64,000 nucleotides of DNA from NCBI GenBank assembly GCA_002269645.1, contig NIVC01000082.1, positions 186,001 through 250,000 of the forward strand, written 5' to 3'. Below, one piece after another: positions 4,359 through 59,026 of the stretch (positions within the stretch are counted from its first letter, which is position 1; each line of letters opens with the position of its first letter). The notes under the pieces were generated by a model. That model was not told where the DNA came from. It searched no databases and saw nothing but the letters and a program-made list of their open reading frames with translations. Both the position numbers and the translations under genes were made by a program. Source of the DNA: Macrostomum lignano. Its lineage: Eukaryota.

Positions 4359-5975
4359 AGTGTGCTATGGCATCAGTGTGAGTGTGCTATGGCATCAGTG
4401 AATGTGCTATGGCATCAGTGTGAGTGTGCTATGGCATCAGTGAATGTGCTATGGCATCAGTGAATGTGCTATGGCATCAGTGTGAGTGTGCTATGGCATC
4501 AGTGAATGTGCTATGGCATCAGTGAATGTGCTATGGCATCAGTGTGAGTGCTATGGTATCAGTGAATGTGCTATGGCATCAGTGAATGTGCTATGGCATC
4601 AGTGTGAGTGTGCTATGGCATCAGTGAATGTGCTATGGCATCAGTGAATGTGCTATGGCATCAGTGAATGTGCTATGGCATCAGTGAATGTGCTATGGCA
4701 TCAGTGTGAGTGTGCTATGGCATCAGTGAATGTGCTATGGCATCAGTGTGAGTGTGCTATGGCATCAGTGAATGTGCTATGGCATCAGTGAATGTGCTAT
4801 GGCATCAGTGTGAGTGTGCTATGGCATCAGTGAATGTGCTATGGCATCAGTGAATGTGCTATGGCATCAGTGAATGTGCTATGGCATCAGTGAATGTGCT
4901 ATGGCATCAGTGTGAGTGTGCTATGGCATCAGTGAATGTGCTATGGCATCAGTGTGAGTGTGCTATGGCATCAGTGAATGTGCTATGGCATCAGTGAATG
5001 TGCTATGGCATCAGTGTGAGTGTGCTATGGCATCAGTGAATGTGCTATGGCATCAGTGAATGTGCTATGGCATCAGTGAATGTGCTATGGCATCAGTGAA
5101 TGTGCTATGGCATCAGTGTGAGTGTGCTATGGCATCAGTGAATGTGCTATGGCATCAGTGAATGTGCTATGGCATCAGTGTGAGTGTGCTATGGCATCAG
5201 TGAATGTGCTATGGCATCAGTGAATGTGCTATGGCATCAGTGTGAGTGTGCTATGGCATCAGTGAATGTGCTATGGCATCAGTGTGAGTGTGCTATGGCA
5301 TCAGTGAATGTGCTATGGCATCAGTGAATGTGCTATGGCATCAGTGTGAGTGTGCTATGGCATCAGTGAATGTGCTATGGCATCAGTGAATGTGCTATGG
5401 CATCAGTGTGAGTGTGCTATGGCATCAGTGAATGTGCTATGGCATCAGTGAATGTGCTATGGCATCAGTGAATGTGCTATGGTATCAGTGTGAGTGTGCT
5501 ATGGCATCAGTGAATGTGCTATGGCATCAGTGTGAGTGTGCTATGGCATCAGTGAATGTGCTATGGCATCAGTGAATGTGCTATGGCATCAGTGAATGTG
5601 CTATGGCATCAGTGAATGTGCTATGGTATCAGTGTGAGTGTGCTATGGCATCAGTGAATGTGCTATGGCATCAGTGTGAGTGTGCTATGGCATCAGTGAA
5701 TGTGCTATGGTATCAGTGAGTGTGCTATGGCATCAGTGAATGTGCTATGGTATCAGTGTGAGTGTGCTATGGCATCAGTGAATGTGCTATGGCATCAGTG
5801 AATGTGCTATGGCATCAGTGAATGTGCTATGGCATCAGTGAATGTGCTATGGCATCAGTGAATGTGCTATGGCATCAGTGAATGTGCTATGGCATCAGTG
5901 AATGTGCTATGGCATCAGTGTGAGTGTGCTATGGCATCAGTGAATGTGCTATGGTATCAGTGAGCGTGCTATGGT
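4359..5975 (+). repeat. 20/22-bp minisatellite TGTGCTATGGCATCAGTG(AA|TGAG)
   Basis: Highly homogeneous array of two length variants. Confidence 0.95.
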
Positions 5976-11286: not shown

Positions 11287-12868
11287 TTGTCAAACTCTAT
11301 AGTGCAAACTGTGTCAGATTCTATAGTGCAAACTGTGTCAGATTCTATAGTGCAAACTGTGTCAGATTCTATAGTGCACACTGTGTCAGATTCTATAGTG
11401 CAAACTGTGTCAGATTCTAAAGTGCAAACTGTGTCAGATTCTATAGTGCAAACTGTGTCAGATTCTAAAGTGCAAACTGTGTCAGATTCTATAGTGCAAA
11501 CTGTGTCAGATTCTATAGTGCAAACTGTGTCAGATTCTATAGTGCAAACTGTGTCAGATTCTATAGTGCAAACTGTGTCAGATTCTAAAGTGCAAACTGT
11601 GTCAGATTCTATAGTGCAAATTGTGTCAGATTCTATAGTGCAAACTGTGTCAGATTCTATAGTGCAAACTGTGTCAGATTCTAAAGTGCAAACTGTGTCA
11701 GATTCTATAGTGCAAACTGTGTCAGATTCTATAGTGCAAACTGTGTCAGATTCTATAGTGCACACTGTGTCAGATTCTATAGTGCAAACTGTGTCAGATT
11801 CTATAGTGCAAACTGTGTCAGATTCTAAAGTGCAAACTGTGTCAGATTCTATAGTGCAAACTGTGTCAGATTCTATAGTGCAAACTGTGTCAGATTCTAT
11901 AGTGCACACTGTGTCAGATTCTATAGTGCAAACTGTGTCAGATTCTATAGTGCAAACTGTGTCAGATTCTAAAGTGCAAACTGTGTCAGATTCTATAGTG
12001 CAAACTGTGTCAGATTCTATAGTGCAAACTGTGTCAGATTCTATAGTGCAAACTGTGTCAGATTCTATAGTGCAAACTGTGTCAGATTCTATAGTGCAAA
12101 CTGTGTCAGATTCTATAGTGCAAACTGTGTCAGATTCTATAGTGCAAACTGTGTCAGATTCTAAAGTGCAAACTGTGTCAGATTCTATAGTGCAAACTGT
12201 GTCAGATTCTAAAGTGCAAACTGTGTCAGATTCTATAGTGCAAACTGTGTCAGATTCTATAGTGCAAACTGTGTCAGATTCTATAGTGCAAACTGTGTCA
12301 GATTCTATAGTGCAAATTGTGTCAGATTCTATAGTGCAAGCTGTGTCAGATTCTATAGTTCAAACTGTGTCAGATTCTATAGTGCAAACTGTGTCAGATT
12401 CTATAGTGCAAACTGTGTCAGATTCTATAGTGCAAATTGTGTCAGATTCTATAGTGCAAACTGTGTCAGATTCTATAGTGCAAACTGTGTCAGATTCTAT
12501 AGTGCAAGCTGTGTCAGATTCTATAGTGCAAACTGTGTCAGATTCTATAGTGCAAACTGTGTCAGATTCTATAGTGCAAATTGTGTCAGATTCTATAGTG
12601 CAAGCTGTGTCAGATTCTATAGTGCAAACTGTGTCAGATTCTATAGTGCAAGCTGTGTCAGATTCTATAGTGCAAACTGTGTCAGATTCTATAGTGCAAA
12701 CTGTGTCAGATTCTATAGTGCACACTGTGTCAGATTCTATAGTGCACACTGTGTCAGATTCTATAGTGCAAACTGTGTCAGATTCTATAGTGCAAACTGT
12801 CAGATTCTATAGTGCAAACTGTGTCAGATTCTATAGTGCAAACTGTCAGATTCTATAGTGCAAACTGT
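11287..12868 (+). repeat. 24-bp minisatellite ATAGTGCAAACTGTGTCAGATTCT
   Basis: Near-perfect tandem array; explains the 526-aa SDSIVQTV ORF. Confidence 0.97.
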
Positions 12869-23669: not shown

Positions 23670-26600
23670 TCAATATTTCCCGTGGCCACCGCCAGCAGCC
23701 GTGGACTTCACCAGCTGGGCAGCCAAATCGCCTGCTTCGTGCAGCCGGCGCTGCAGCTCCGAGGCCAGCGCTGGGGCGTCTTTTAACTGCTGATCAAGCT
23801 GAGTCACCGTGTCCTCTAGTTGCTATGGCAACGGTAGGGGTGAAGAGGGGTCTTGGCAGAGACAAGTAATATATATTGGTAATAATATTACGTTGTTAGG
23901 AAAGTGGTCATTCTAACCAAGTCATTTGCTTTTCAGCACCCACTTATGGCCAGATATTTTGAACTAAACAGTATCACCCTTAGGTTGCCATGGGCAAGAA
24001 AAGCAAGCTTCCTTCACGACAACGCGCGGCCGCACACCGCTAATTTGACCCGGCAAAAGCTGCTAGATCTGGGCTGGGAAGTGCTGCCCCACCCACCATA
24101 CAGCCCCGATCTGGCCCCTACAGACTATCATCTGTTTCGAGCGCTGCACCATCATTTGAAGGAAAAAACTTTCAAAGATGACAAAGATTTTGATGAGAAA
24201 ATGGAAATCTCAATAAGAGATTTGATAGTAAAAGAGATTTGATCGGAAAACAGGAAATGTCACCCTGGGAGCAAAGTATCAAGGGAAATCTAAGCCTGAG
24301 AATAAAACCTAATTGAAAGCAACATCGCGGCAAACACGATAAAATACAGTACGATAAATATGAGCAGTAATAATAACACATGCTCACCTTTATCCTAGTC
24401 TTGAGCATAAAGTTCTCCTTTTCTAACTGGGCCACTCTGGCATCGGATTCTGGCTGAAATTATTTTAATTAAAGCAAATTGTCCGAGTTAAACCTTTCTT
24501 TCACAGGAAAATCAATTACTCGTACTTTAAAAAACATTAATTAGGACGATTTAAATGTGAACAAGGAGAAGACAGGCGACAGGGGAGGAGAGGCAGACAG
24601 GGGTGGAGAAAAGAGGGAGACAGGGAGGGAGAAGAGAGGGAGACAGGGAGGGAGAAGAGAGGGAGACAGGGAGGGAGAAGAGAGGGAGACAGGGAGGGAG
24701 AAGAGAGGGAGACAGGGAGGGAGAAGAGAGGGAGACAAGGAGGGAGAAGAGAGGGAGACAGGGTAGGAGAAGAGAGGGAGACAGGGAGAGAGAAGAGAGG
24801 GAGACAGGGAGGGAGAAGAGAGGGAGACAGGGAGAGAGAAGAGAGGGAGACAGGGAGAGAGAAGAGAGGGAGACAGGGGGGGAGAAGAGAGGGAGACAGG
24901 GAGGGAGAAGAGAGGGAGACAGGGAGGGAGAAGAGAGGGAGACAGGGAGAGAGAAGAGAGGAGACAGGAAGGGAGAAGAGGGAGACAGGGAGGGAGAAGA
25001 GAGGGAGACAGGGGGGAGAAGAGAGGGAGACAGGGAGGGAGAAGAGAGGGAGACAGGGAGGGAGAAGAGAGGGAGACAGGGTGGGAGAAGAGAGGGAGAC
25101 AGGGAGGGAGAAGAGGGAGACAAGGAGGGAGAAGAGAGGGAGACAGGGAGGGAGAAGAGAGGGAGACAGGGAGGGAGAAGAGAGGGAGACAGGGAGGGAG
25201 AAGAGAGGGAGACAGGGAGGGAGAAGAGAGGGAGACAGGGTGGGAGAAGAGAGGGAGACAGGGAGGGAGAAGAGGGAGACAGGGAGGGAGAAGAGAGGGA
25301 GACAGGGTGGGAGAAGAGAGGGAGACAGGGAGGGAGAAGAGGGAGACAGGGAGGGAGAAGAGAGGGAGACAGGGTGGGAGAAGAGAGGGAGACAGGGAGG
25401 GAGAAGAGGGAGACAGGGAGGGAGAAGAGAGGGAGACAGGGTGGGAGAAGAGAGGGAGACAGGGAGGGAGAAGAGGGAGACAGGGAGGGAGAAGAGAGGG
25501 AGACAGGGTGGGAGAAGAGAGGGAGACAGGGAGGGAGAAGAGGGAGACAAGGAGGGAGAAGAGAGGGAGACAGGGAGGGAGAAGAGAGGGAGACAGGGAG
25601 GGAGAAGAGAGGGAGACAGGGAGGGAGAAGAGAGGGAGACAGGGAGGGAGAAGAGAGGGAGACAGGAAGGGAGAAGAGGGAGACAGGGAGGGAGAAGAGA
25701 GGGAGACAGGGGGGAGAAGAGAGGGAGACAGGGAGGGAGAAGAGAGGGAGACAGGGAGGGAGAAGAGAGGGAGACAGGGAGGGAGAAGAGAGGGAGACAG
25801 GGGGGAGAAGAGAGGGAGACAGGGAGGGAGAAGAGAGGGAGACAGGGTGGGAGAAGAGAGAGACAGGGAGGGAGAAGAGAGGGAGACAGGGAGGGAGAAG
25901 AGCGAGACAGGGAGGGAGAAGAGGGAGACAGGGAGGGAGAAGAGGAAGACAGGGAGGGAGAAGAGGGAGACAGGGAGGGAGAAGAGGGAGACAGGGAGGG
26001 AGAAGAGAGGGAGAAGAGGGAGACAGGGAGGGAGAAGAGAGGGAGACAGGGAGGGAGAAGAGGGTGACAGGGAGGGAGAAGAGGGACAGGGACAGGGAGG
26101 GGAAGAGAGGGAGACAGGGAGGGAGAAGAGGGTGACAGGGAGGGAGAAGAGAGGGAGAAGAGGGAGACAGGGAGGGAGAAGAGAGGCAGACAGGGAGGGA
26201 GAAGAGAGGGAGACAGGGGGGGGGGGGGCGAGAGGCAGACAGGGGAGAAGAGACAAGAAGAGAATAGAGGCACTAGATAAACCAAACACTCACAGCCCTG
26301 GCCCCAGCCCGCAGTGCCTGGTTCTCTCGCTCTAATTTCTGCATATTCAAATTAGCCTGCTGAAGCTGGGCAGCCAACCGCTCGACATCATCACTGCTGC
26401 CCAGAGAGTTTTCACCTCCACTCTGCGAGTGCTGCTGTTGCATTGGCTGCTCGTATTCTGCTGACAAACTTCCTCCGCCGCCGCCACCGAAAACTTGATG
26501 CGACGGCTGCGGCTGTTGCTTACGCAGACGGCGCGTGTGATCCAGAGCTTGACAGAACTGCTCCACGAATCTGGGGAAGAGGGCGGGTGAGAGAAATCCC

Positions 26601-37600: not shown

Positions 37601-39075
37601 AACTTACGCTACGACAGCTTTATAGTACGACCCCGTTGTCTTTGCCTCTCATGACTCGCCTGACTGGCTGACAACGTATTTTGTTGTTGTCTTTGTATTC
37701 TGAACAACATTGAAAAGACGCCACCCTTTGCCCAAGTGAGCATGTTTTTCGACAGCGTCAATCTACTGGCCAACAATGCTTGAAAAAACAATGAAAACCG
37801 GGCGGAAGCTTCAATCCATCCATTCTTCACCCTCCGCTCTTCCCAATCCCTCCTCACCCAGCCCAACTTTGCGTCGCATGGCGCAAGTTGCGTCACTCAA
37901 AAGTCAATACTGCTGTCAAATGTTGCTGAGTATATACACGTAATGCAAGATTTCACTAATAAACAATGCAAAGAATTGCCGATAACGAATAGAAATTTTG
38001 AATGAACTCAATGACGCATCGCCAAAAGCACGTGGCAGAAATTGTATATTATTAAAAATGATTGATTAAAATTAATATGTGACGCGCTACACCGTCACAA
38101 CAATTAGTGCCAATTGTGTACTTCAACTTCAGCTATGCTAACATAATAAAACTTAGGAAATTACACTATATGACGCAAAGAAAAATAGCCTGCAAAATTT
38201 TCGTCTTCCGTAAATAAATTCCAGAAGGTGATGTGCATGTAATAGAATGAAAATTAAAACAAAAAATATAATTAACGAATGAACGGATGACGCAACCGCG
38301 CTTTGCTCTGAATTCAATTATTGCAGAATTAGGCCAACAAGAGTTTCAGGTTAAAACAAAGGATTGATTTGAACTTTTTTATTAAATAAAAATAGAAATG
38401 TAACAAAAAATAAAGTAACGTAAAAAAACTAAAATGAAACTCCGGCATGCTTCGCTTAAAGATTTAAAACCCGAACTGCGTTTTGTTCTTTGCAACAACT
38501 GGTTAAAGCAAACTATGAGCTTTCTAAAACCAAATTTAATTAATCTCGTACACAGGTAAAGACAAGCGAGCCTTTACGCCCACATATCTTTACAGATCTG
38601 ATAACGATCAAAGCAGCCCGAGAGCTCCGCGTCCCACCCTCTGGGTTGTTGCAAGTTAAAGCAAAAATACAACATAATACACAGCGCGTACCTACAAAGT
38701 GAAAAATGTTAAAATTAATAAGTTAAAATTAAACGCAAAAAGAAACGTACAGTTTAATTTTTTGAGTAGAAATGTTTTGTTTTAATCGTTGTTTGTTTTA
38801 CTTCGTATTCGCTAAGTTTTGTTGATTATTGATTTTTTAAGTTAAACGCACTTTGAAAAAAATACACTTACGCTCTTACTTCGTAAAAGATGCATAAATA
38901 GAAATAAAAAGGGATGAGAGAGGAAAATGTTAAATATTAGTCGGACACTACAGAGCACAACACACAATTAAAGAAAAATTCTAACCAAAACATGGCGATT
39001 TTTTCCTCACACTCTTACAGCCAAACTTCTATTCGTTCTTTACTCAGTCTTCTGCGAGCGGGATGTTCAGCAAAA

Positions 39076-40988
39076 TCAATCGGAAATGGCGTAGGCCATG
39101 TAAGCGAAGCCGTCTGTGTCCAGACAGGTCAGATGGTCAGCGCAACCGGAGCGAGGCTCGTAGCAGGCAAAGCCAAGAAAAGGCAACGTCCTCATCAGGG
39201 TGTCTGAGAAAGTTAAATGTGCAGACAATTTTTGCAACTAAATTGGAATTCGTAAATAAATGAGTTTGGTAATTAAATAAGAATTGTTCAGCGACCATCT
39301 TAGAGGGCTGCTCAGCGATCATCTTAGAGGGCTGCTCAGCGATCATCTTAGAGGGCTGCTCAGCGACCATCTTAGAGGGCTGCTCAGCGACCATCTTAGA
39401 GGGCTGCTCAGCGACCATCTTAGAGGGCTGCTCAGCGATCATCTTAGAGGGCTGCTCAGCGATCATCTTAGAGGGCTGCTCAGCGATCATCTTAGAGGGC
39501 TGCTCAGCGATCATCTTAGAGGGCTGCTCAGCGATCATCTTAGAGGGCTGCTCAGCGATCATCTTAGAGGACTGCTCAGCGATCATCTTAGAGGGCTGCT
39601 CAGTGATCATCTTAGAGGACTGCTTAGCGACCATCAGAGGACTGCTCAGCGACCATCTTAGAAAATGATCAGTGACCATCGTAGAAGAGCTCAGAGATTA
39701 GCAACCAATCTTAGATAGCCGCCTAGCAACAAGCTTCAGACGGATGTTCAACCAAAATTTTAGTGCGTTTAATCAGCGTCAATTGAAAAAACTGTAAGCT
39801 GATCAAAAGTATTGTGAAATTAATAGTGTACTATTCGCTCCGCTCACCTTTGTCCTGCCTCTGCCGGCTAATGCCAAGCAGCACGCGTCGGCATTCCAGT
39901 TCTTCTTCGGCAAACTCCAACATATCGGTCAGTTCTCGCTTGAGACTTTCGCCAATCAGCTCAGTCTCGCCAAGGTGGAGCACCATGGCTCGGCCGGAGC
40001 CGTCCGGACTGTCGCTAACTAGATTGTAAGGCAGAGTAGGCTGTTGGTTGCTGCTTTGCTGCTCAACCGCCGACTCTGCAGCTTCCCAATCGTCATCATC
40101 GAAGGTGTTCTCATTCTCGTAATAGTCTCCAACATCGTTGTAGCCGAAATTGTCGCTGCCGATGACGAAATGAGCCAACTTATTCTGCTTCTTCTGGTCT
40201 TCTGGTCTGGTCTCCACAGTCTCATCTCGCTGCTGCTGCTGCTGCTGACTGCCCGATCTTCTGGCAGCAAACGACTGTCCGCTAACATGGGTGACAGGGG
40301 GCTGTTTTGATTCCCCCAGGCCGCTGCCCTCTGTCAACAACTCCGCGCTGTCAACTAAGGCGGCCCGGGGAGCATCAAAAACGCCACCCAGGCCCGGCAG
40401 ACGTTCGCGAGCAGAAGTTCTCTAACTCCGTGCTCCTGATGGGAGGGGGAGATTAGAATAAATAATATACCAACCATCTAATATGCAAAAAATTAACATT
40501 TGTTAGACTTTGTCGATTCATCTAAAAATGCAAAGTTATTACACTCGACTTAATAGAAATAGATCACAGCTGAATAACCGACATATGTCCCTGAATTTTT
40601 CTCCACAGCTGCAAGTCTTTGGAGTGAAGTTTAAAGTAAAAAAGCTTATTTCATTTAAGTTCGGCTATCGAAGCCATGCCCATTGGTTTTATAATTATTA
40701 ATTACTAATTAGATTTAAAGAACCAAAAGCCGAAGCCTCATAAAAATATTATTTTTGGGGAAAGAAAGCGATAAAAAATCTGAAGAAATTTTATTCTACA
40801 GTACCAATGAAGCGGCAGCAAAATTTATAATCGTAATCATAATTTAATTTATAATTAAATTCAGAGTCCAGACACTGGCAAATAATATAATTTTGGGATG
40901 TCTGATTGCAACCAACATTTACACAAGACAAAAGGTAGTGTGGCCATCTCGTTCAAAGAGTATTTTACCTTAAAGAAAGCTTCGCCAT
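39076..40988 (-). CDS. oaz: Ornithine decarboxylase antizyme, expressed through +1 programmed ribosomal frameshifting (~244 aa)
   Basis: Exon 1 40988-40969 (ATG GCG AAG CTT TCT TTA AG|gtaaaa), exon 2 40435-39848, exon 3 39203-39076. ORF1 MAKLSLRSTELENFCSRTSAGPGWRF* ends TTT TGA T at 40380-40374. The +1 ORF2 starts GAT at 40376 and contains LTDMLEFAEEELECRRVLLGISRQRQDKDTLMRTLPFLGF..FAYMAY, matching antizyme LLEFAEEQL..NREDRAALLRTFSFLGF..FMAY. Confidence 0.93.
39285..39665 (+). repeat. 24-bp minisatellite GGGCTGCTCAGCGATCATCTTAGA in antizyme intron 2
   Basis: Tandem array; explains the LLSDHLRG ORF. Confidence 0.95.
40292..40380 (-). promoter_or_regulatory. Antizyme +1 frameshift site (UUU-UGA-U) with 3' H-type RNA pseudoknot
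   Basis: Stem 1 40371-40360 UCCCCGGGCCGC pairs with 40324-40313 GCGGCCUGGGGG (12 bp, 2 G-U). Stem 2 40336-40326 UGACAGAGGGC pairs with 40302-40292 GCCCCCUGUCA (10 of 11). Loop 1 23 nt, hinge 1 nt, loop 3 10 nt. Starts 3 nt after the UGA. Confidence 0.85.
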
Positions 40989-41553
40989 GTTTGGTTCCCG
41001 TAGAGGCTACAACGCGACTGCCTTGAGGTCGGCTGGTTTTGAGAAAATTGCATACCCAGAGGGTAAACAAATTATTATGACGAAAATGTCTAATTTGATT
41101 TCATATATATAGACTCTGGATACAGGTGGTAAAACAAAAAAGAACACAAACATTTATTAAAAAAGAGGTAAATTGTTTACTCTTTTAATTCTGACATGTA
41201 ATTAAAAAATGTGTTAGAAACTTATTGCTTAAAGTGATAAACACAACATGTTTAGCTTTTTTTAAAAGATAGGACATTTCCTGCAAAAATATTTCGTAAT
41301 ATAAACGGCGAGACTGACTAAATTTCGAGACTCGCAACTAACTCACTATCAGAAAATTATAATACATGTTTAAAATAAATAGCTGGGCCTAATGTATAGT
41401 AAAATTTGTAGACTGTTTTTTGATCAAAAGTCTTTATGGCAATGTGCAAATAGTATTCTGTAAACATTAACAATTCTGTGCATTTTTTATCCATTCTTGT
41501 TTTCAGCATTCTTGTTTTTTAGCCATGTTTTACCTTTTATTTCAGCTTTTTCC

Positions 41554-42924
41554 CAAGGACTTCTAGACTAACAGGACGTAAAACTCAAAGATCGTGCAAT
41601 TTTTTAGAGGCCACGATTTCCTGGAAAAAATACACTGCGGAGATAGGAAAAAATCAGTTTTTTGTCACAAAAACAGTGATTGTATTTGATCTGGGGCAGT
41701 GAAGACTACCATTCTTTTAATTTAACATGCACAACATGTTACTCTAATATATTTTCATATAGCTGTGTATTGAAGTTTTCATTTTCATGTTGTTTTTACT
41801 TCATTTCATAAGCCCAAAGTTGCAAATACTCACAAGTGGCATTAGCCAAACTTTTTGTGCTGTTCCTTTTTTGAATCAAGTATATTTGTAATAAAACTGT
41901 GCATATAGGTACTCTTAATCTTTTATTGTATGGTTAGTAACTATACTAGGCCTACTAGTATTAGTTATACCTGTCTACTATTACTACTAGGTATAATGTC
42001 TAAGAGTTATGAGTCTAAGACCTATCAAAGATTCTTGAAAATTAGGCTTTATATATGGAATCACACATCCTTTTATTGGTAAAATAGGCCCTAACTAAAA
42101 TGACTGAATACAAGGCATGTTTGTCTTATTCATTTTCTTGCCTAATGAATAATGATATTTGATCTATGGATTCCAAAATCTTCTTAATAAGTGGGGCATA
42201 CTTACATTTACAATTTATAGGCCTAATTTATTTCAGTTTTTCAATTCTTTTAAACATGATTCTAGCTAAAGAGAAGAAAGAAGAGAGAGAAATAAAAATG
42301 GTAGTATCTATCTGTCTAAACTCTAAATCATTCATATAATAATAATATGCAATTATGATTTTTATAAATGAAGGACTTTTATTGACCTTATAGTTTAACT
42401 TATTAAATCTATACCTCCTATAGTAAATAAAAACTAATTGAGCTATTAACTATAATAGTAACTCTTATATCATATTATATATTGGAATGTATATCTAGGA
42501 ATTAAATAGTTACTAGGCCTTATATATGCATTGAAATGGAACTATATCTACAATAAAAGATTAAGAGTACCTACATGCACAGTTTTCATTACAAATATAC
42601 TTGATTCAAAAAAGGAACAGCACAAAAAGTTTGGCTAATGCCACTTGTGAGTATTTGCAACTTTGGGCTTATGAAATGAAGTAAAAACAACATGAAAATG
42701 AAAACTTCAATACACAGCTATATGAAAATATAAGAGTAACATGTTGTGCATGTTAAATTAAAAGAATGGTAGTCTTCACTGCCCCAGATCAAATAAAATC
42801 ACTGTTTTTGTGACAAAAAACTGATTTTTTCCTATCTCCACAGTGTATTTTTTCCAGGAAATCGTGGCCTCTAAAAAATTGCACGATCTTTGAGTTTTAC
42901 GTCCTGTTAGTCTAGAAGTCCTTG
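41554..42924. mobile_element. Non-autonomous DNA transposon (MITE/foldback), 1371 bp, ~376-bp TIRs, 8-bp TSD
   Basis: TIRs 41554-41930 and 42549-42924 (ends CAAGGACTTCTAGAC...GTCTAGAAGTCCTTG). Identical flanking CTTTTTCC at 41546-41553 and 42925-42932. AT-rich non-coding centre. Confidence 0.93.
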
Positions 42925-45233: not shown

Positions 45234-48200
45234 ATGCCTGCTGTAAAAGACTCCATGCGCGGACTTGCAGTCTTCATTTCTGATATCAGAAATTGTAAGA
45301 TTACACTATTCTTTTACTAATTTATTCTGTTAACTGCTTCTTAAAGTTCTCTTTTCAAAGACACAAATGATGCATAACTTAAATTTGGCAGGCAAAAGCA
45401 AGGAAGCCGAAGAGAAACGAATCAACAAAGAGCTAGCCAATATACGGTCCAAATTCAAAGGCGACAAAGCTCTAGATGGCTACCAGAAGAAGAAATATGT
45501 TTGCAAACTGCTGTTTATTTTTCTTCTGGGCAATGACATCGATTTTGGTCACATGGAGGCCGTTAATCTGCTGAATTCGAACAAGTACACTGAGAAACAG
45601 ATTGTAAGTACTGTTGGCTTGTTGTCTGTTTTATATCTAGACTATAAGTTCCTTACGTTCATCATTTATTGTCATACACTGTTCCTATGCAAGTACATTG
45701 CATTCCTAGCAACAGTTCTCGTAGGTGCTGACATGGCTAGTAGTTATTGCAACACTCTGAAATTAGGAAGTCTTTCGTAGCCATAGAAACCTCTTGGTAG
45801 CCATAGCCAAATTCGGTATAACCATAGAAACCTCTTGGTAGCCATAGCAACGCCTGGCAACCATAGAAACCTCTTCGTAGCCATATCAACATCCGGTAAC
45901 CATAGAAACCTAGTAGTAAGCAACGTCTTGTTGCCATAGAAACCTAGTAGCAGCACCGGTAACCATAGAAACCTCTTGGTAGCCATAACAACACCTGGTA
46001 ACCATTGAAACCTCTTCGTAGCCATAACAACACCTGGTAACCATAGAAACCTCTTGGCAGCCATAGTAACACCTGGTAACCATAGAAATCTCTTGGTAGC
46101 CATATCAACACCCGGTAACCGTAGAAACCTCTTGGTAGCCATAACAACACCTAGTAACCATAGAAACCTCTTGGTAGCCATAGCAACAACCATGTGGTTA
46201 TATAAGCACTTGGCAGTCATAGCGACACTTTCAATAGCAATAGCATCGCATTCTGTTAGCCATAGATAGAAGTAATGTTTGTCATGGAACACCTTGGTAG
46301 CTACGCGTATCGAGTTGCAGATAAACCGTACTCCTCACTTCCCCGACAGGGCTACCTATTCATCTCGGTACTAATCAGCGAGAACAACGAGCTCATGCGC
46401 CTGGTCCAGCAGAATCTAAAGAACGACCTGGCCTCCCGCAATCCGGTGCACGTCAACCTCGCTCTGGAGTGCATCGCCAATATTGGCAGCAAAGAGATGG
46501 CGGAAATGTTCGCCCCAGAGATTCCCAAGCTCCTAGTGATGGGAGACGCTGGCGATACTGTTAAACAGAGCGCCGCTCTGTGCCTGTTGAAGCTCTTCAG
46601 GACAGCTCCGGAGATGGTGCCGATTGGCGACTGGACATCGCGTGTTATCCACCTGCTCAACGATCAGCACATGGGCGTTGTGACCGCCGCCGTGTCTCTG
46701 ATTGAAGCTCTGGTTAAACGGAATCCGGACGATTTCAAAGGCTGCGTGTCGCTTAGTATCTCCAGGCTGGCTCGGATTGTCACTTCGTCCTATACTGACC
46801 TGCAGGTGAGACTGACTGACTGACTGACTGACTGACTGACTGACTGACTGACTGACTGACTGACTGACTGACTGACTGACTGACTGACTGACTGACTGAC
46901 TGACTGACTGACTGACTGACTGACTGACTGACTGACTGACTGACTGACTGACTGACTGACTGACTGACTGACTGACTGACTGACTGACTGACTGACTGAC
47001 TGACTGACTGACTGACTGACTGACTGACTGACTGACTGACTGACTGACTGACTGACTGACTCACTGACTGACTGACTGACTGACTGACTGACTGACTGAC
47101 TGACTGACTGACTGACTAGTAGATAGAGCGTTGGACTCATGACTGGAAGGTCGGTGGTTCGATTCTCTACCCAACTTGCAACAATTTGTGTCCTTGAGCA
47201 AGACACTTAACTCTGCACTGCTTCAGTTCAGCCAAGTATAAAAATGGGTGCCAGCATTAGCTGGGGTAGATGAGGGTGTGTGGCGCCCTCCTCCCCTGGT
47301 CCATGGACTATATAATCAATTTATAAACCAATAATAAACCCAATGCAAACCCTCAGGACTACACCTACTACTTTGTGCCGGCGCCGTGGCTATCAGTGAA
47401 GCTGCTCCGGCTGCTGCAGAACTACCCGCCGCCAGAGGACACTACGGTGCGAAATCGCCTAGCAGAGTGCCTGGAGACCATTCTTAACAAAGCGGTTGAG
47501 CCGCCTAAATCTAAGAAAGTGCAGCATTCGAACGCTAAAAATGCCGTATTATTCGAAGCGATCAGCTTGATCATTCATATGGACAGCGATCCGAGCCTTC
47601 TGGTGAGGGCCTGCAGCCAACTGGGCCAGTTTCTATCCAATAGGGAGACTAACCTGCGCTACCTGGCATTGGAGAGCATGTGCCTACTGGCCACGTCTGA
47701 GTTCTCTCACGATGCGGTTAAGAGGCACCAGGAGACTGTTGTCACGGCGCTGAAGGTGAGGCATTAACCCACAGCTTCCTGGGATTCTAATCCTAAATTT
47801 AGCATCCTAAATTGTTCGCGTTCTAAGCACTTATTAAGCCTCAATTTTGAAGTGTAAACCGTATCTCTTGTTGATTAATTATTGTAAAAACTGTATTTTA
47901 CAAATAATCAGCAAATGTTAAACAAATTAAGAAATATATATTTCGTTCTACTTACTTTGAATGGGATAAGTAGTCTGGTGCGGATACGTCAGCAAGCATC
48001 TAATAATTAATAAATTTTGCTACCATTGCCGCAATCAGAGCGAGCGCGACGTGTCAGTTCGCCAGCGCGCTGTCGATCTGCTCTACGCAATGTGCGATCG
48101 CAGCAACGCCGAAGAGATCGTCGGCGAGATGCTCACCTATTTGGAGACGGCCGATTATTCTATTCGCGGCGAATTAGTGCTCAAAATTGCCATCCTAGCC

Positions 48201-54200: not shown

Positions 54201-56583
54201 AGAGGGGATCTGAAATGAAGAGAGGGGATCTGAAATGAAGAGAGGGGATCTGAAATGAAGAGAGGGGATCTGAAATGAAGAGAGGGGATCTGAAATGAAG
54301 AGAGGGGATCTGAAATGAAGAGAGGGGATCTGAAATGAAGAGAGGGGATCTGAAATGAAGAGAGGGGATCTGATATGAAGAGAGGGGATCTGAGATGAAA
54401 AGAAGGGATCCGAAATGAAAAGAAGGGATCCGAAATGAAGAGAAGGGATCCGAAATGAAGAGAAGGTGTTCCAAATGAATTTTTCACTTTACATCCTGAT
54501 CTTCTAGCAGCGCCAACTGCGGCCACACCTACCTCTGGCGGTGGCGGCGGCGTGAAGCTTCAGGGCGACATCGCTGGCGCCGAGAGCAACACTGACTCGG
54601 ACCTGCTGGGACTCGACTTCGGTGGCAGCGCCCCGGCTGCTGCTGCGGGCGGAGGCGGCGCAGGCGGCGGCAGTGTCGACCTTCTGTCGTCGATTCTCGA
54701 CGTCGGCGTGTCGTCGTCGTCGTCATCGTCAGCAGCGCCGTCGGCGGCGTCGGGTGCGTCGGCTCAACGGAAAACGGTGGTCGTTGGAGCCGGCGCCTCT
54801 GGGTCCATTGTTGGCGAAGAGAACTGGCACAAGTTCGTGTGCAAGAATTCCGGCGTGTTGTACGAGAATGACATCCTGCAGGTTGGTTCTATGAGAATCA
54901 TGTCTGATCTAACAGCATCTCCAATCTAACAGAATCATTTCCAATCTTTCAGAATCATCTCCGATCTATCAGAATCATCTCCGATCTTTCAGACTCATCT
55001 CCGATCTTTCAGAATCATCTCCGATCTTTCAGAATCATTTCCAATCTATCAGAATCATTTCCAATCTATCAGAATCATGTCCGATCTATCAGAAGCATCT
55101 CTGATCTATCAGAATCATCTCTGATCTTTCAGAATCATTTCCAATCTATCAGAATCATTTCCAATCTATCAGAATCATTTCCAATCTATCAGAATCATTT
55201 CCAATCTATCAGAATCATGTCCGATCTATCAGAATCATTTCCAATCTATCAGAATCATTTCCAATCTATCAGAATCATGTCCGATCTATCAGAAGCATCT
55301 CTGATCTATCAGAATCATCTCCGATCTTTCAGAATCATCTCCGATCTTTCAGAATCATCTCCGATCTTTCAGAATCATCTCCAATCTATCAGAATCATTT
55401 CCAATCTATCAGAATCATTTCCAATCTATCAGAATCATTTCCAATCTATCAGAATCATTTCCAATCTATCAGAATCATTTCCAATCTATCAGAATCATTT
55501 CCAATCTATCAGAATCATTTCCAATCTATCAGAATCATTTCCAATCTATCAGAATCATGTCCGATCTATCAGAAGCATCTCTGATCTATCAGAATCATCT
55601 CCGATCTTTCAGAATCATCTCCGATCTATCAGAATCATCTCCAATCTATCAGAATCATCTCCAATCTATCAGAATCATCTCCAATCTATCAGAATCATCT
55701 CCAATCTATCAGAATCATTTCCTATCTATCAGAATCATCTCCGATCTATCAGAATCATCTCCAATCTATCAGAATCATTTCCTATCTATCAGAATCATCT
55801 CCGATCTATCAGAATCATCTCCAATCTATCATAATCATCTCCGATCTTTCAGAATCATCTCCGATCTATCAAAATCATTTCCAATCTATCATAATCATTT
55901 CCAATCTATCATAATCATTTCCAATCTATCATAATCATTTCCAATCTATCATAATCATCTCTGATCTATCAGAATCATCTCCGATCTATCAGAATCATCT
56001 CCAATCTATCAGAATCTTTTCCAATCTATCAGAATCTTTTCCAATCTATCATAATCATTTCCAATCTATCATAATCATTTCCAATCTATCAGAATCATCT
56101 CCGATCTATCAGAATCATCTCCGATCTATCAGAATCATCTCTGATTAAAGAAGATCATTTTTAAGTTTTGCGAATGACTCCCGTCTTTTAGAGTCACAGC
56201 CGATGTTAGAGTCATTTTAATACTTTTATTTTTGTCGAATGTGTTTAAATCACTTTTTTGTCGAATTCGGCCTTCGCTCCCAAGCAATGCCCGCCCATCT
56301 CCTGCCTGCCCAGGTTGGCGTCAAATGCGACTACCAGCAGAGCAGTGGTCGCATTGTGGTTTACTACGGCAACAAGACACCGGCACCGCTGGCCCAGTTT
56401 GCCAGCGTCATCAACCTGCCCGACTCCAGCCTCACCAATCAGCTGGGCATCCAGGTGAAGCCAGTCGGCGATCGGGTTGGCGCCTCCGAGCAAGTCAACG
56501 AAGTCATCACCGTCGACTGCATGGCCGAGTTCTCCGCCTGTCCGCTGCTCAACATCCGCTTTGTGTGAGTGCCAGACAGACAC

Positions 56584-56682
<99 letters not shown>

Positions 56683-56683
56683 C

Positions 56684-56716
<33 letters not shown>

Positions 56717-56795
56717 AAGACACACGGACAGACACACAGACAGACACACAGACAGACAGACAGACACACAGACAGACAGACAGACAGACAGACAC

Positions 56796-56858
<63 letters not shown>

Positions 56859-57139
56859 CACAGACAGACAGACAGACACACGGACAGACAGACACACAGA
56901 CAGACAGACAGACACACGGACAGACACACAGACAGACACACAGACAGACAGACAGACAGACAGACACACAGACAGACAGAAAGACACACGGACAGACACA
57001 CAGACAGACACACAGACAGACAGACAGACAGACAGACACACAGACAGACAGACACACAGACAGACAGACACACAGACAGACAGACAGACAGACACACAGA
57101 CAGACAGACAGACACACGGACAGACACACAGACAGACAC

Positions 57140-57176
<37 letters not shown>

Positions 57177-57423
57177 AAGACACACGGACAGACACACAGG
57201 CAGACACACAGACAGACAGACAGACAGACAGACACACAGACAGACAGACAGACACACAGACAGACAGACAGACAGACAGACAAAAAGACACACGGACAGA
57301 CACACAGACAGACACACAGACACACAGACAGACACACAGACAGACAGACACACAGACAGACAGACAGACAGACAAAAAGACACACGGACAGACACACAGA
57401 CAGACACACAGACAGACAGACAC

Positions 57424-57464
<41 letters not shown>

Positions 57465-59026
57465 AAGACACACGGACAGACACACAGACAGGTAATCCAA
57501 GACAAGCAGAAAGGCAGGCTGATTGACAAACAGATCCTAAGATGTTAAAACACTAACACATCTGACAATGTGTGTTATTGAATTTCATCTTTCACTTTTA
57601 CTAACAGTAGCCTGTATTGCACATTCCCATCTGAAATATTTTTTCAACTTTCAGCTACTCCGGCGTTGCCCAATCGATTACGCTGAAGCTGCCGCTCACT
57701 ATTAATAAGTTTATGCAGAGCAGCGAGATGGACAGCGCCACATTTTTCCAGCATTGGAAGCAGCTGTCTCAGTGAGTGCAATCTCTTTAGCCAATAAAAA
57801 ACACATGGAAATTCAAATTGTATCTATTTTATCTTCTATTTTTTAAGGCCGGAGCAAGAATGCCAGAAGATATTCCAAGCAAAGTTTCCAATGGACGCGG
57901 AGACTACTAAAACAAAGGTTTGCGATGTTTATTAAGTCTTTTTTCTTGCTTCTTGAAAGTTAAGCTAATGATATTTTACTGTCGTAAAATCCTCAGATAC
58001 TGGGATTCGGATTCAGCTTGCTGTCTAACATCGATTCGAATCCCGCTAATTTTGTTGGAGCCGGCATTGTGCAGACCAAATCTGGCAACATTGGCTCCCT
58101 GTTCAGGCTGGAGCCCAATCAGCAGGCTCAGGTGAGGGGGGGGTCGCCTGCGAATAATCTGTGATGAGTGATTCGGAGAGTGACTGAGTGATCGATTAAG
58201 TGACTGAGTGATCGAGAGAGTGACTGAGTGATCGATTAAGTGACTGAGTGATCGGTTGAGTGACTGAGTAATTCATTGAGTGACTGAGTGATTGATTTAG
58301 TGACTGAGTGATCGGTTGAGTGACTGAGTGATCGATTAAGTGACTGAGTGATCGATTGTGTGACTGAGTGATCGATTGTGTGACTGAGTGATCGAGAGAG
58401 TGACTGAGTGATCGATTGAGTAATTGAGTGATCGAGTGTGTGACTGAGTGATCGATTGAGTGACTGAGTGATCGAGAGAGTGACTGAGTGATCGATTAAG
58501 TGACTGAGTGATCGATTGTGTGACTGAGTGATCGATTGTGTGACTGAGTGATCGATTGTGTGACTGAGTGATCGAGAGAGTGACTCAGTGATCGATTGAG
58601 TAACTGAGTGATCGAGTGTGTGACTGAGTGATCGATTGAGTGACTGAGTGATCGAGAGAGTGACTGAGTGATCGATTGAGTGACTGAGTGATCGATTGAG
58701 TGACTGAGTGATCGAGAGAGTGACTGAGTGATCAATTGAGCGACTGGGTGATCGAGAGATAACTAAGTAATTAAGTCAGTGAATGATCGATCAAGTGGAT
58801 CAAGTGAGGGACTGAGTGATCAAGTAAGGCCCGGAGCGGAGTGATCGTGTGAGTCATTAAGCGATTGGGCGAGTTATTAATTCAGTATCGAGAATTCAGT
58901 ATTCAGATCGAGAATCGTTTTTATCCTTCACGGGATTTATCATTGCAGATGTACCGCCTCACGGTGCACAGCATCAAGCCTGGTGTGAGCAAGCGTCTGT
59001 GCGAACTGCTCGAGACTCAAATTTGA
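45234..59026 (+). CDS. AP2A: AP-2 complex subunit alpha (alpha-adaptin), 13 coding exons, 988 aa
   Basis: Exons 45234-45294, 45392-45603, 46350-46805, 47357-47755, 48039-48332, 49062-49409, 53811-53982, 54508-54881, 56314-56564, 57655-57771, 57848-57917, 57997-58131 and 58949-59026 total 2967 nt, all GT-AG and in phase. [27 protein letters not shown].., [28 protein letters not shown], ear domain to MYRLTV. AATAAA at ~59131. Confidence 0.97.
45765..46190 (+). repeat. ~39-bp degenerate minisatellite (CCATAGAAACCTCTTGGTAGCCATAACAACACCTGGTAA) in AP2A intron 2
   Basis: About ten degenerate copies. Confidence 0.88.
46812..47117 (+). repeat. (ACTG)n microsatellite immediately after the AP2A exon 3 donor
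   Basis: Almost uninterrupted tetranucleotide run. Confidence 0.97.
47117..47320 (+). mobile_element. tRNA-derived SINE with a CORE (MIR-like) central domain
   Basis: tRNA-like head AGTAGATAGAGCG-TTGGACTCATGACTGGA-AGGTC, B box GGTTCGATTC (47156-47165), then GTGTCCTTGAGCAAGACACTTAACTCTGCACTGCTTCAGTTCAGCCAAGTATAAAAATGGG. This resembles my recollection of the MIR CORE GTGACCTTGGGCAAGTCACTTAACCTCTCTGAGCCTCAGTTTCCTCATCTGTAAAATGGG. Confidence 0.75.
48365..48835 (+). repeat. ~23-bp degenerate minisatellite GTTGCTAAGGCTCAGGTAGTTG in AP2A intron 5
   Basis: Tandem degenerate units. Confidence 0.88.
49450..53730 (-). mobile_element. Penelope-like element (Neptune-type), degenerate, antisense in AP2A intron 6
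   Basis: RT motifs [45 protein letters not shown]. Cys-rich linker [15 protein letters not shown] endonuclease [37 protein letters not shown]. Upstream ORF with an SGNH-like segment. Several stops and frameshifts. Confidence 0.9.
49561..49605 (-). ncRNA. Degenerate minimal hammerhead-ribozyme-like motif at the PLE 3' end
   Basis: Minus strand: caatc CTGACAA A GGCC-aggcaata-GGCC GAAA TATT ggtca. Core order and helix II fit, but G8 is A and helix I is only ~3 bp. Confidence 0.45.
54030..54480 (+). repeat. 20-bp minisatellite GGGGATCTGAAATGAAGAGA in AP2A intron 7
   Basis: Near-perfect tandem array. Confidence 0.95.
54895..56145 (+). repeat. 20-bp minisatellite AGAATCAT(C/T)TCC(G/A)ATCT(A/T)TC in AP2A intron 8
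   Basis: Long variant-rich array starting ~15 nt after the donor. Confidence 0.95.
56572..57490 (+). repeat. Compound (GACA)n/(GACACA) microsatellite in AP2A intron 9
   Basis: Starts right after gtgagtgc; source of six artefact ORFs. Confidence 0.96.
58160..58760 (+). repeat. 20-bp minisatellite GTGACTGAGTGATCGATTGA in AP2A intron 12
   Basis: Tandem variant units. Confidence 0.93.

Follow-up and report, generated by a model that had tools for sequence, protein, structure and literature searches.

A probable class IIa frameshift pseudoknot within antizyme mRNA from the flatworm Macrostomum lignano

Antizyme frameshifting is the classic cellular case of programmed +1 recoding and serves as a polyamine sensor. 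The 64,000 nucleotides (nt) analyzed here, positions 186,001 to 250,000 of contig NIVC01000082.1 (GCA_002269645.1) from the flatworm Macrostomum lignano and hereafter called the window, contain a three-exon ornithine decarboxylase antizyme gene at 40988-39076 on the minus strand (locus L002, in reverse orientation), and interleaved complementary segments follow its shift site. A first interpretation made without database searches, hereafter the sequence-only reading, had proposed that the single-nucleotide hinge and the long second stem of this element may mark a pseudoknot subtype specific to the lineage. The locus raises the question whether the element is a new kind of recoding signal or a member of a family that is already described. 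Based on the comparisons presented below, it is very probably (we estimate a probability of about 0.9) the 3' frameshift pseudoknot of the M. lignano antizyme mRNA, belonging to the invertebrate class IIa family.

The second open reading frame (ORF2) of the gene carries the Pfam domain ODC_AZ (1.5e-13) and is 99% identical to protein P0001 and fully identical to the cluster member P0004, both of which UniProt lists as ornithine decarboxylase antizymes from Macrostomum lignano. This agrees with the antizyme gene recognized in the sequence-only reading and adds the identity of its host. The first open reading frame (ORF1) ends with ...GPGWRF-UGA and ORF2 is open in the +1 frame; all coordinates of this gene refer to the minus strand. 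The shift site UUU-UGA (40380-40375) consists of the P-site codon UUU (40380-40378) and the ORF1 stop codon UGA (40377-40375). In the +1 frame, the sequence CGU-UUU-UGA-U is read as GUU-UUU-GAU, with post-shift re-pairing possible on the UUU at 40379-40377 and with GAU (40376-40374) as the next codon. UUU-UGA has been named as the antizyme shift site of the flatworm M. lignano (Ivanov & Atkins 2007, PMC1874602). Directly upstream, at 40395-40381, lies the conserved 5' sequence GGGCCUGGGUGGCGU, which is in register with the consensus GGGCCUC-G--GUG- of the 49 antizyme cassettes described below, GGGCCU and GGUGG-G being the aligned parts. The mRNAs bearing class II pseudoknots retain the 5' modules A and B (PMC1874602), to which GGGCCUGGGUGGCGU may correspond.

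Downstream of the UGA, a spacer of 3 nt (UGC, 40374-40372) leads to the 5' arm of stem 1 (S1; UCCCCGGGCCGC, 40371-40360). It is followed by loop 1 of 23 nt (CUUAGUUGACAGCGCGGAGUUGU, 40359-40337), the 5' arm of stem 2 (S2; UGACAGAGGGC, 40336-40326), a hinge consisting of a single A (40325), the S1 3' arm (GCGGCCUGGGGG, 40324-40313), loop 3 of 10 nt (AAUCAAAACA, 40312-40303) and, finally, the S2 3' arm (GCCCCCUGUCA, 40302-40292), which gives a total size of 80 nt. S1 comprises 12 standard pairs, including two G·U pairs (U40371·G40313 and G40366·U40318), and S2 is paired at 10 of its 11 positions, with one A·C mismatch between A40330 of the 5' arm and C40298. All pairs of both stems, the loop lengths and the 1-nt hinge were re-checked and are present as proposed in the sequence-only reading, which had also placed the shift site and an H-type pseudoknot 3 nt past the ORF1 stop correctly.

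The pairing is much stronger than expected by chance. A simple finder for H-type pseudoknots, which uses the summed stem energy as its score, assigned the element -43.7 kcal/mol, a value reached by none of 1000 dinucleotide shuffles (mean -10.6, standard deviation 8.5, best -33.0 kcal/mol). Among 8,522 overlapping 90-nt segments from both strands of the entire 64 kb, the element ranks first, and the second-ranked candidate is its own reverse complement.

The comparison set was collected by several routes. An exhaustive HMMER search with ORF2 gave 49 antizymes and reached other species, whereas a word-indexed protein search with ORF2 returned nothing beyond the M. lignano cluster. At the contig level, searching with the UniProt-style protein of 233 amino acids (aa) returned no loci; loci were obtained with the 88-aa GenBank fragments. 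Many of the antizymes found with HMMER have a peptide footprint in the +1 frame, D(A/V)P(R/H)A...(T/A)EGSG(L/V)G...(Q/E)PPV, which is the translation of the four pseudoknot arms. DNA was retrieved for eight proteins found by HMMER and gave eight distinct cassettes. In addition, metagenome contigs were scanned for a DNA pattern (CCCC, a gap of 20-50 nt, and CAGAGGGCRRCGRNNNGGGG). About half of the resulting 120 stretches were antizyme cassettes, and the remainder were chance bacterial matches, which were discarded. Bacterial matches such as L044, L059, L078 and L081 encode ...TEGSGLGL... in apparent kinase-type ATPase motifs, a chance convergence at the peptide level. Parsing resulted in 49 distinct cassettes, nine of which (window included) were obtained by protein similarity and are independent of the DNA pattern.

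All 49 cassettes have the same architecture, with a 3-nt spacer, S1 arms of 12 nt, a hinge of 1 nt, S2 arms of 11 nt and a loop 3 of 10 nt; the nine sequences from protein similarity show the same values for hinge, S2 arms and loop 3. The hinge base is A in 48 of the 49 cassettes and G in one, and CCCC......CG / CG......GGGG is invariant in S1. Loop 1 measures 14, 17, 20, 23, 26, 29 or 35 nt, and the total size ranges from 71 to 92 nt. With a loop 1 of 23 nt, the window falls within the family range of 14-35 nt, and its values are mid-range; the label "compact" given to the element by the sequence-only reading is therefore not appropriate, as 80 nt is an ordinary size for the family.

M. lignano itself offers a further comparison. 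A second, divergent antizyme paralog is located at positions 2302-2420 of L009 (GCA_002269645.1, contig NIVC01000808.1); its C-terminal product (P0006) shows 66% identity to the window antizyme, and its shift site is likewise UUU-UGA. The two paralogs are identical at 47 of 47 stem and hinge bases, but loop 1 has 17 nt in L009 versus 23 in the window, and loop 3 shares 3 of 10 bases. The difference in loop 1 reflects two extra codons in the window, which lead to the GUUGACAG repeat. In this species, both antizyme paralog types keep their stems base for base, while the loops drift.

Covariation was analyzed in an arms-only alignment (A1) of 45 distinct sequences, using partners slid by 1-3 columns and 500 shuffles as controls. 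Standard pairs account for 89.9% of the cells in this alignment, compared with 40-57% for slid 3' partners. Seven pairs are changed on both sides (39 cells), and the covariation score was reached by 0/500 shuffles. The nine pattern-independent sequences were also analyzed separately: 92.8% of the cells are paired (40-55% with slid partners), six pairs are doubly changed, and again none of 500 shuffles reached the score. S1 and S2 both covary. For example, pair 7 of S1 occurs as G-C, C-G and U-G, pairs 9 and 12 of S1 as C-G and U-A, and pair 2 of S2 as G-C or, in 7 sequences, as C-G. The S2 mismatch is the norm of the family, being unpaired in 38/45 sequences and an A-U pair in the remaining 7/45. 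As a matter of speculation, this conserved A·C position may have a structural role, for instance as a built-in weak spot or as a protonated A·C wobble. In neither stem is the outermost pair (U·G in S1, U-A in S2) conserved across the family.

The arms lie in a coding region, and their peptide motif (DAPRA...TEGSGLG...QPPV) recurs in many antizymes from the protein search. One could hence imagine that selection acts on the peptide and that the complementarity is a by-product. We consider this to have hardly any probability at all. Synonymous third positions are invariant inside the arms; in the Pro codon CCU of the S2 3' arm, for example, the fourfold-degenerate U never changes, although it was not fixed by the pattern. 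Amino acids change when paired bases change together, as in the top pair of S1, where C-G to U-A converts Ala to Val and, at the same time, Ser to Asn. Loops 1 and 3 are equally coding and yet vary freely, loop 1 in length as well, and the pairing is halved when partners are slid by 1-3 nt. Mutagenesis of the oyster element has also been described: disruption of stem 2 was equivalent to deletion of the pseudoknot, and both stems were required (PMC1874602).

How does this architecture relate to the known classes? Class II pseudoknots of invertebrate antizymes extend up to 90 nt or more, mainly due to the length of loop 1, which may be more than 35 nt, and they have been reported in Platyhelminthes (PMC1874602). 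The widespread class IIa, exemplified by the oyster, has a single-nucleotide hinge, whereas class IIb of aphids, fleas and psyllids differs in stem 2 and in the length of its hinge, which is 4-14 nt (PMC1874602). The longer hinge ascribed to invertebrate versions in the sequence-only reading is thus correct for class IIb but not for class IIa. The features that place the window element in class IIa are its position in an antizyme mRNA, its start after 3 nt, two covarying stems, the 1-nt hinge and a long loop 1. This functionally well-understood class was already described between 2004 and 2007, including for Platyhelminthes, and the element adds no new kind to it. The class IIa pseudoknot is reportedly also attributable to Ivanov et al. 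2004 J Mol Biol 339:495, with Crassostrea gigas as the type example.

This comparison bears directly on the proposal of a new, flatworm-specific pseudoknot subtype characterized by a long S2 and a 1-nt hinge. Flatworm-like sequences (the window, L009, L006-L008, L004, L098, L005 and L011) do form a recognizable subgroup: they have their own S1 sequence, CCCCGG(G/A)CCG(C/U), where the other cassettes continue after CCCC with A(C/U) or GC, their shift site is UUU-UGA or AUU-UGA instead of UCC-UGA, and in a rough ORF2 tree they are placed outside the single cluster that unites all UCC/GUU-site sequences. However, the differences of the subgroup are pair-preserving substitutions. Stem lengths, hinge, loop 3, spacer, A·C mismatch and loop 1 range are the same as in the sequences using UCC-UGA, and the window element matches these exactly or almost exactly in both S2 arms and in the hinge. 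A lineage-specific subtype is unsupported because a 1-nt hinge is the defining property of the widespread class IIa (PMC1874602), and all 49 cassettes are alike in this respect. On architecture, the proposal is already refuted, and we regard it as highly improbable.

Several points nevertheless weigh against the class IIa assignment. The pseudoknot, as predicted from sequence, shows every class IIa feature that could be tested. A scan of 38000-42000 against Rfam (E <= 10) matched no antizyme family and gave only two chance hits resembling snoRNAs; because no family matched the region, there is no curated Rfam model against which the element could be tested. Most comparison sequences were derived from the DNA pattern, in which the S2 5' arm, part of the S1 3' arm and the position of the hinge were fixed, so that the constancy of these columns in that set exists by construction; the pattern at no point included loop 3 or the S2 3' arm. 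The A-type copies of M. lignano (L001-L003) are near-identical to each other and, being identical across the cassette, add no covariation. Moreover, the same 80 nt can adopt a nested fold of -39.7 kcal/mol (z = -3.6), which is comparable to the crude sum of S1 (-24.1 kcal/mol) and S2 (-14.4 kcal/mol). The energies therefore do not favor the pseudoknot in the window paralog, and thermodynamics alone is no proof of pseudoknot formation since the nested fold is very stable, too.

The nested fold points to a specific alternative, in which the active 3' element would be a stem-loop made of S1 and a hairpin between two GUUGAC copies, with S2 forming rarely or never. The sequence-only reading had noted a repeat in loop 1. 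Indeed, GUUGACAG occurs twice (40355-40348 and 40338-40331), but only the first copy is wholly contained in loop 1, as 6 of the 8 bases of the second belong to the S2 5' arm. The two GUUGAC copies can pair with each other because GUUGAC is self-complementary when G·U pairs are allowed. In the resulting candidate hairpin within the S1 loop (40355-40333), GUUGACAGC (40355-40347) pairs with GUUGUUGAC (40341-40333) over 9 base pairs (bp), including 3 G·U, with an energy of -11.0 kcal/mol (z = -2.7 versus shuffled loop 1), and the 4 leading nt of the S2 5' arm are sequestered. Together, S1 and this hairpin reach -34.4 kcal/mol, compared to the energy of S1 alone given above. Species with a homolog of stem 1 but without stem 2 have been described (PMC1874602), and the alternative would resemble the stem-1-only antizyme mRNAs that have been reported from Priapulus and Rhodnius. 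We nevertheless consider it quite improbable. The S2 3' arm GCCCCCUGUCA is fully kept in the window and in L009 despite their diverged loop 3, which would be unexpected if S2 were unused, and S2 covaries throughout the family, including the swap of its second pair. Furthermore, the strong nested hairpin requires the two codon insertions, which are found only in the paralog type of the window; its version in L009 and L006 has 6 bp and -7.6 to -7.9 kcal/mol.

The repeat had also been suggested to allow alternative pairing, a suggestion that holds for the pairing of the copies with each other, the stronger alternative, and fails for an exchange of the copies in S2. As an S2 partner (with CUGUCA) in place of the second copy, the first GUUGACAG copy was rejected: it forms 6 bp with -3.0 kcal/mol in isolation, versus -14.4 kcal/mol for the full S2, and it is absent from paralog L009 and from L006.

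Across the family, loop 1 can pair with the S2 5' arm over 4 bp or more in 33/49 cassettes, compared with expectations of 12% when loop 1 is shuffled and 28% when the S2 arms are swapped. Loop 1 of other species contains motifs such as GUGUCA, GUCU, GUCG or GCCA, which can pair with the 4-5 nt at the beginning of the S2 5' arm. The closing pair of this helix occurs as U-A, A-U or G-C, and these states are interleaved on the rough tree. A fixed-register covariation count over all five pairs of the loop-1/S2 hairpin gave 58%, which is not significantly different from the 56% of the shuffle control, and one clade is without the helix. One possible interpretation is that class IIa pseudoknots are two-state elements, in which a loop-1 hairpin and the outer half of S2 exclude each other and the balance between hairpin and pseudoknot could tune frameshift efficiency or help to sense polyamines. 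We consider this tentative idea, which is drawn from sequence complementarity, rather unlikely. If real, a conserved loop-1 hairpin would bear on how class IIa elements modulate shifting, and it is the only lead of research value obtained here.

Returning to the class IIa pseudoknot, the following sequence of events would be expected from its position. Ribosomes would translate the 26 codons of ORF1 until UUU occupies the P site and UGA the A site, where termination at UGA-U would be slow. Because it begins only 3 nt past the stop, the pseudoknot would then lie at or inside the mRNA entrance and, together with the conserved 5' sequence, could favor a +1 shift. The sequence would allow the peptidyl-tRNA-Phe to re-pair perfectly, from UUU to the overlapping UUU, after which GAU would be read and ORF2 translated into functional antizyme. 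By analogy with other antizymes, polyamines would raise the efficiency of the shift and thereby exert negative feedback on polyamine synthesis. For M. lignano, we infer both the stimulation of frameshifting and the response to polyamines from published work on other species.

The complete gene could be assembled from its three exons. The coding part of exon 1 (40988-40969), ATGGCGAAGCTTTCTTTAAG, starts with the ATG at 40988 and encodes M A K L S L before ending with 2 nt of an Arg codon; its donor GT is at 40968-40967, with GTAAAA directly after the exon. This exon was located via L006, a related transcript contig whose 5' end matches here over 21 nt (95%) and whose ORF1 reads MAKLSIRNNELSNFCSRPPAGPGWSF followed by a stop. 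Exon 2 extends from 40435 to 39848 (acceptor AG 40437-40436, donor GT 39847-39846). Its ORF1 part (40435-40375) encodes (R)STELENFCSRTSAGPGWRF and then the stop; L006 and paralog L009 agree with it in phase and encode a similar peptide. The complete ORF1 is thus MAKLSLRSTELENFCSRTSAGPGWRF, 26 codons long and terminated by the UGA of the shift site. The ORF2 part of exon 2, in the +1 frame, covers 40376-39848 from GAU (D) to ...RQRQDK and opens with DAPRAAL... Exon 3 (39203-39076, acceptor AG 39205-39204) contains the end of ORF2 (DTLMRTLPFLGF...AYAISD) with the stop codon TGA at 39078-39076, and joining exons 2 and 3 reproduces the database proteins P0002 and P0004. Intron 2 (39847-39204) is largely filled by a 24-nt minisatellite at 39288-39662 (15.7 copies, 95% matches). 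The copy number of this minisatellite varies among the paralogous loci, and the locus comprises 8911 bases in L001/L002 and 9300 in L003.

In public databases, the antizyme loci L001-L003 are represented in GenBank by PAA65606.1, PAA91652.1 and PAA91617.1, "hypothetical proteins" of 88 aa for which an internal Met was taken as the start. The UniProt entries A0A1I8HZZ7 and A0A1I8HV15, of 233 aa, lack an initial Met and open upstream of the shift site in the +1 frame. The public annotations of this gene are broken because of the frameshift, and the gene models of all copies are wrong. The true product should consist of the 26 aa of ORF1 and 218 aa of ORF2. Confirming the cassette in the M. lignano genome therefore mainly serves annotation.

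The remainder of the window is packed with minisatellites with periods of 12-62 nt (48 rows in Tandem Repeats Finder), for example at 4361-5974, 11288-12868, 24581-26222, 54916-56141 and 56573-57491. The swings in G+C content and strand skew, and most of the long "ORFs" of the window, are explained by these repeats. On the plus strand, an Adaptin_N domain (Pfam, 5.5e-38) is encoded by an exon-like ORF at 46275-46823, and an ORF at 77-673 contains a pair of EF-hands below the Pfam cut-off (7e-06; 26.7 bits versus 30). Both belong to neighboring host genes and are unrelated to the pseudoknot.

Among the known antizyme elements, class I of vertebrate antizyme 1 and 2 (Rfam Antizyme_FSE) resembles the window element in its H-type fold, its start 3 nt past the stop, its single-nucleotide hinge and, presumably, in stimulating the +1 shift. 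However, class I elements stay within about 60 nt, differ in sequence and are considered to be of separate origin, and the Rfam scan described above gave no antizyme hit. Class IIb shares the position and a similar stem 1 (PMC1874602) but, with its longer hinge and other stem 2, lacks the 1-nt hinge and the class IIa stem 2 found in the window.

The agreement with class IIa, for which the oyster Crassostrea gigas was compared by description, covers the H-type fold 3 nt past the ORF1 stop, a conserved S1 core of about 11 bp starting from a pyrimidine run (UCCCC in the window, UCCCU in the consensus), the single-nucleotide hinge, the long loop 1, the covarying S2 and, probably, the conserved 5' sequence upstream. 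The differences concern the shift codon, which is UUU and not UCC, as recorded for M. lignano in the 2007 paper, S1 positions 6-8, where GGG and its matching partners replace the A(C/U)G of most members, and the two codons by which loop 1 exceeds that of L009. In the core (ACAGAGGGC-A-GCGG..UGGGG) and in the 3' arm of S2 (GCCCCCUGU), the window element is nearly identical to the 48 other cassettes, which come from diverse organisms. Conservation of stem 1 across phyla implies homology and not just analogy, and judged by its sequence in comparison with these 48 cassettes, the M. lignano element appears to be a homologous member of the same family.

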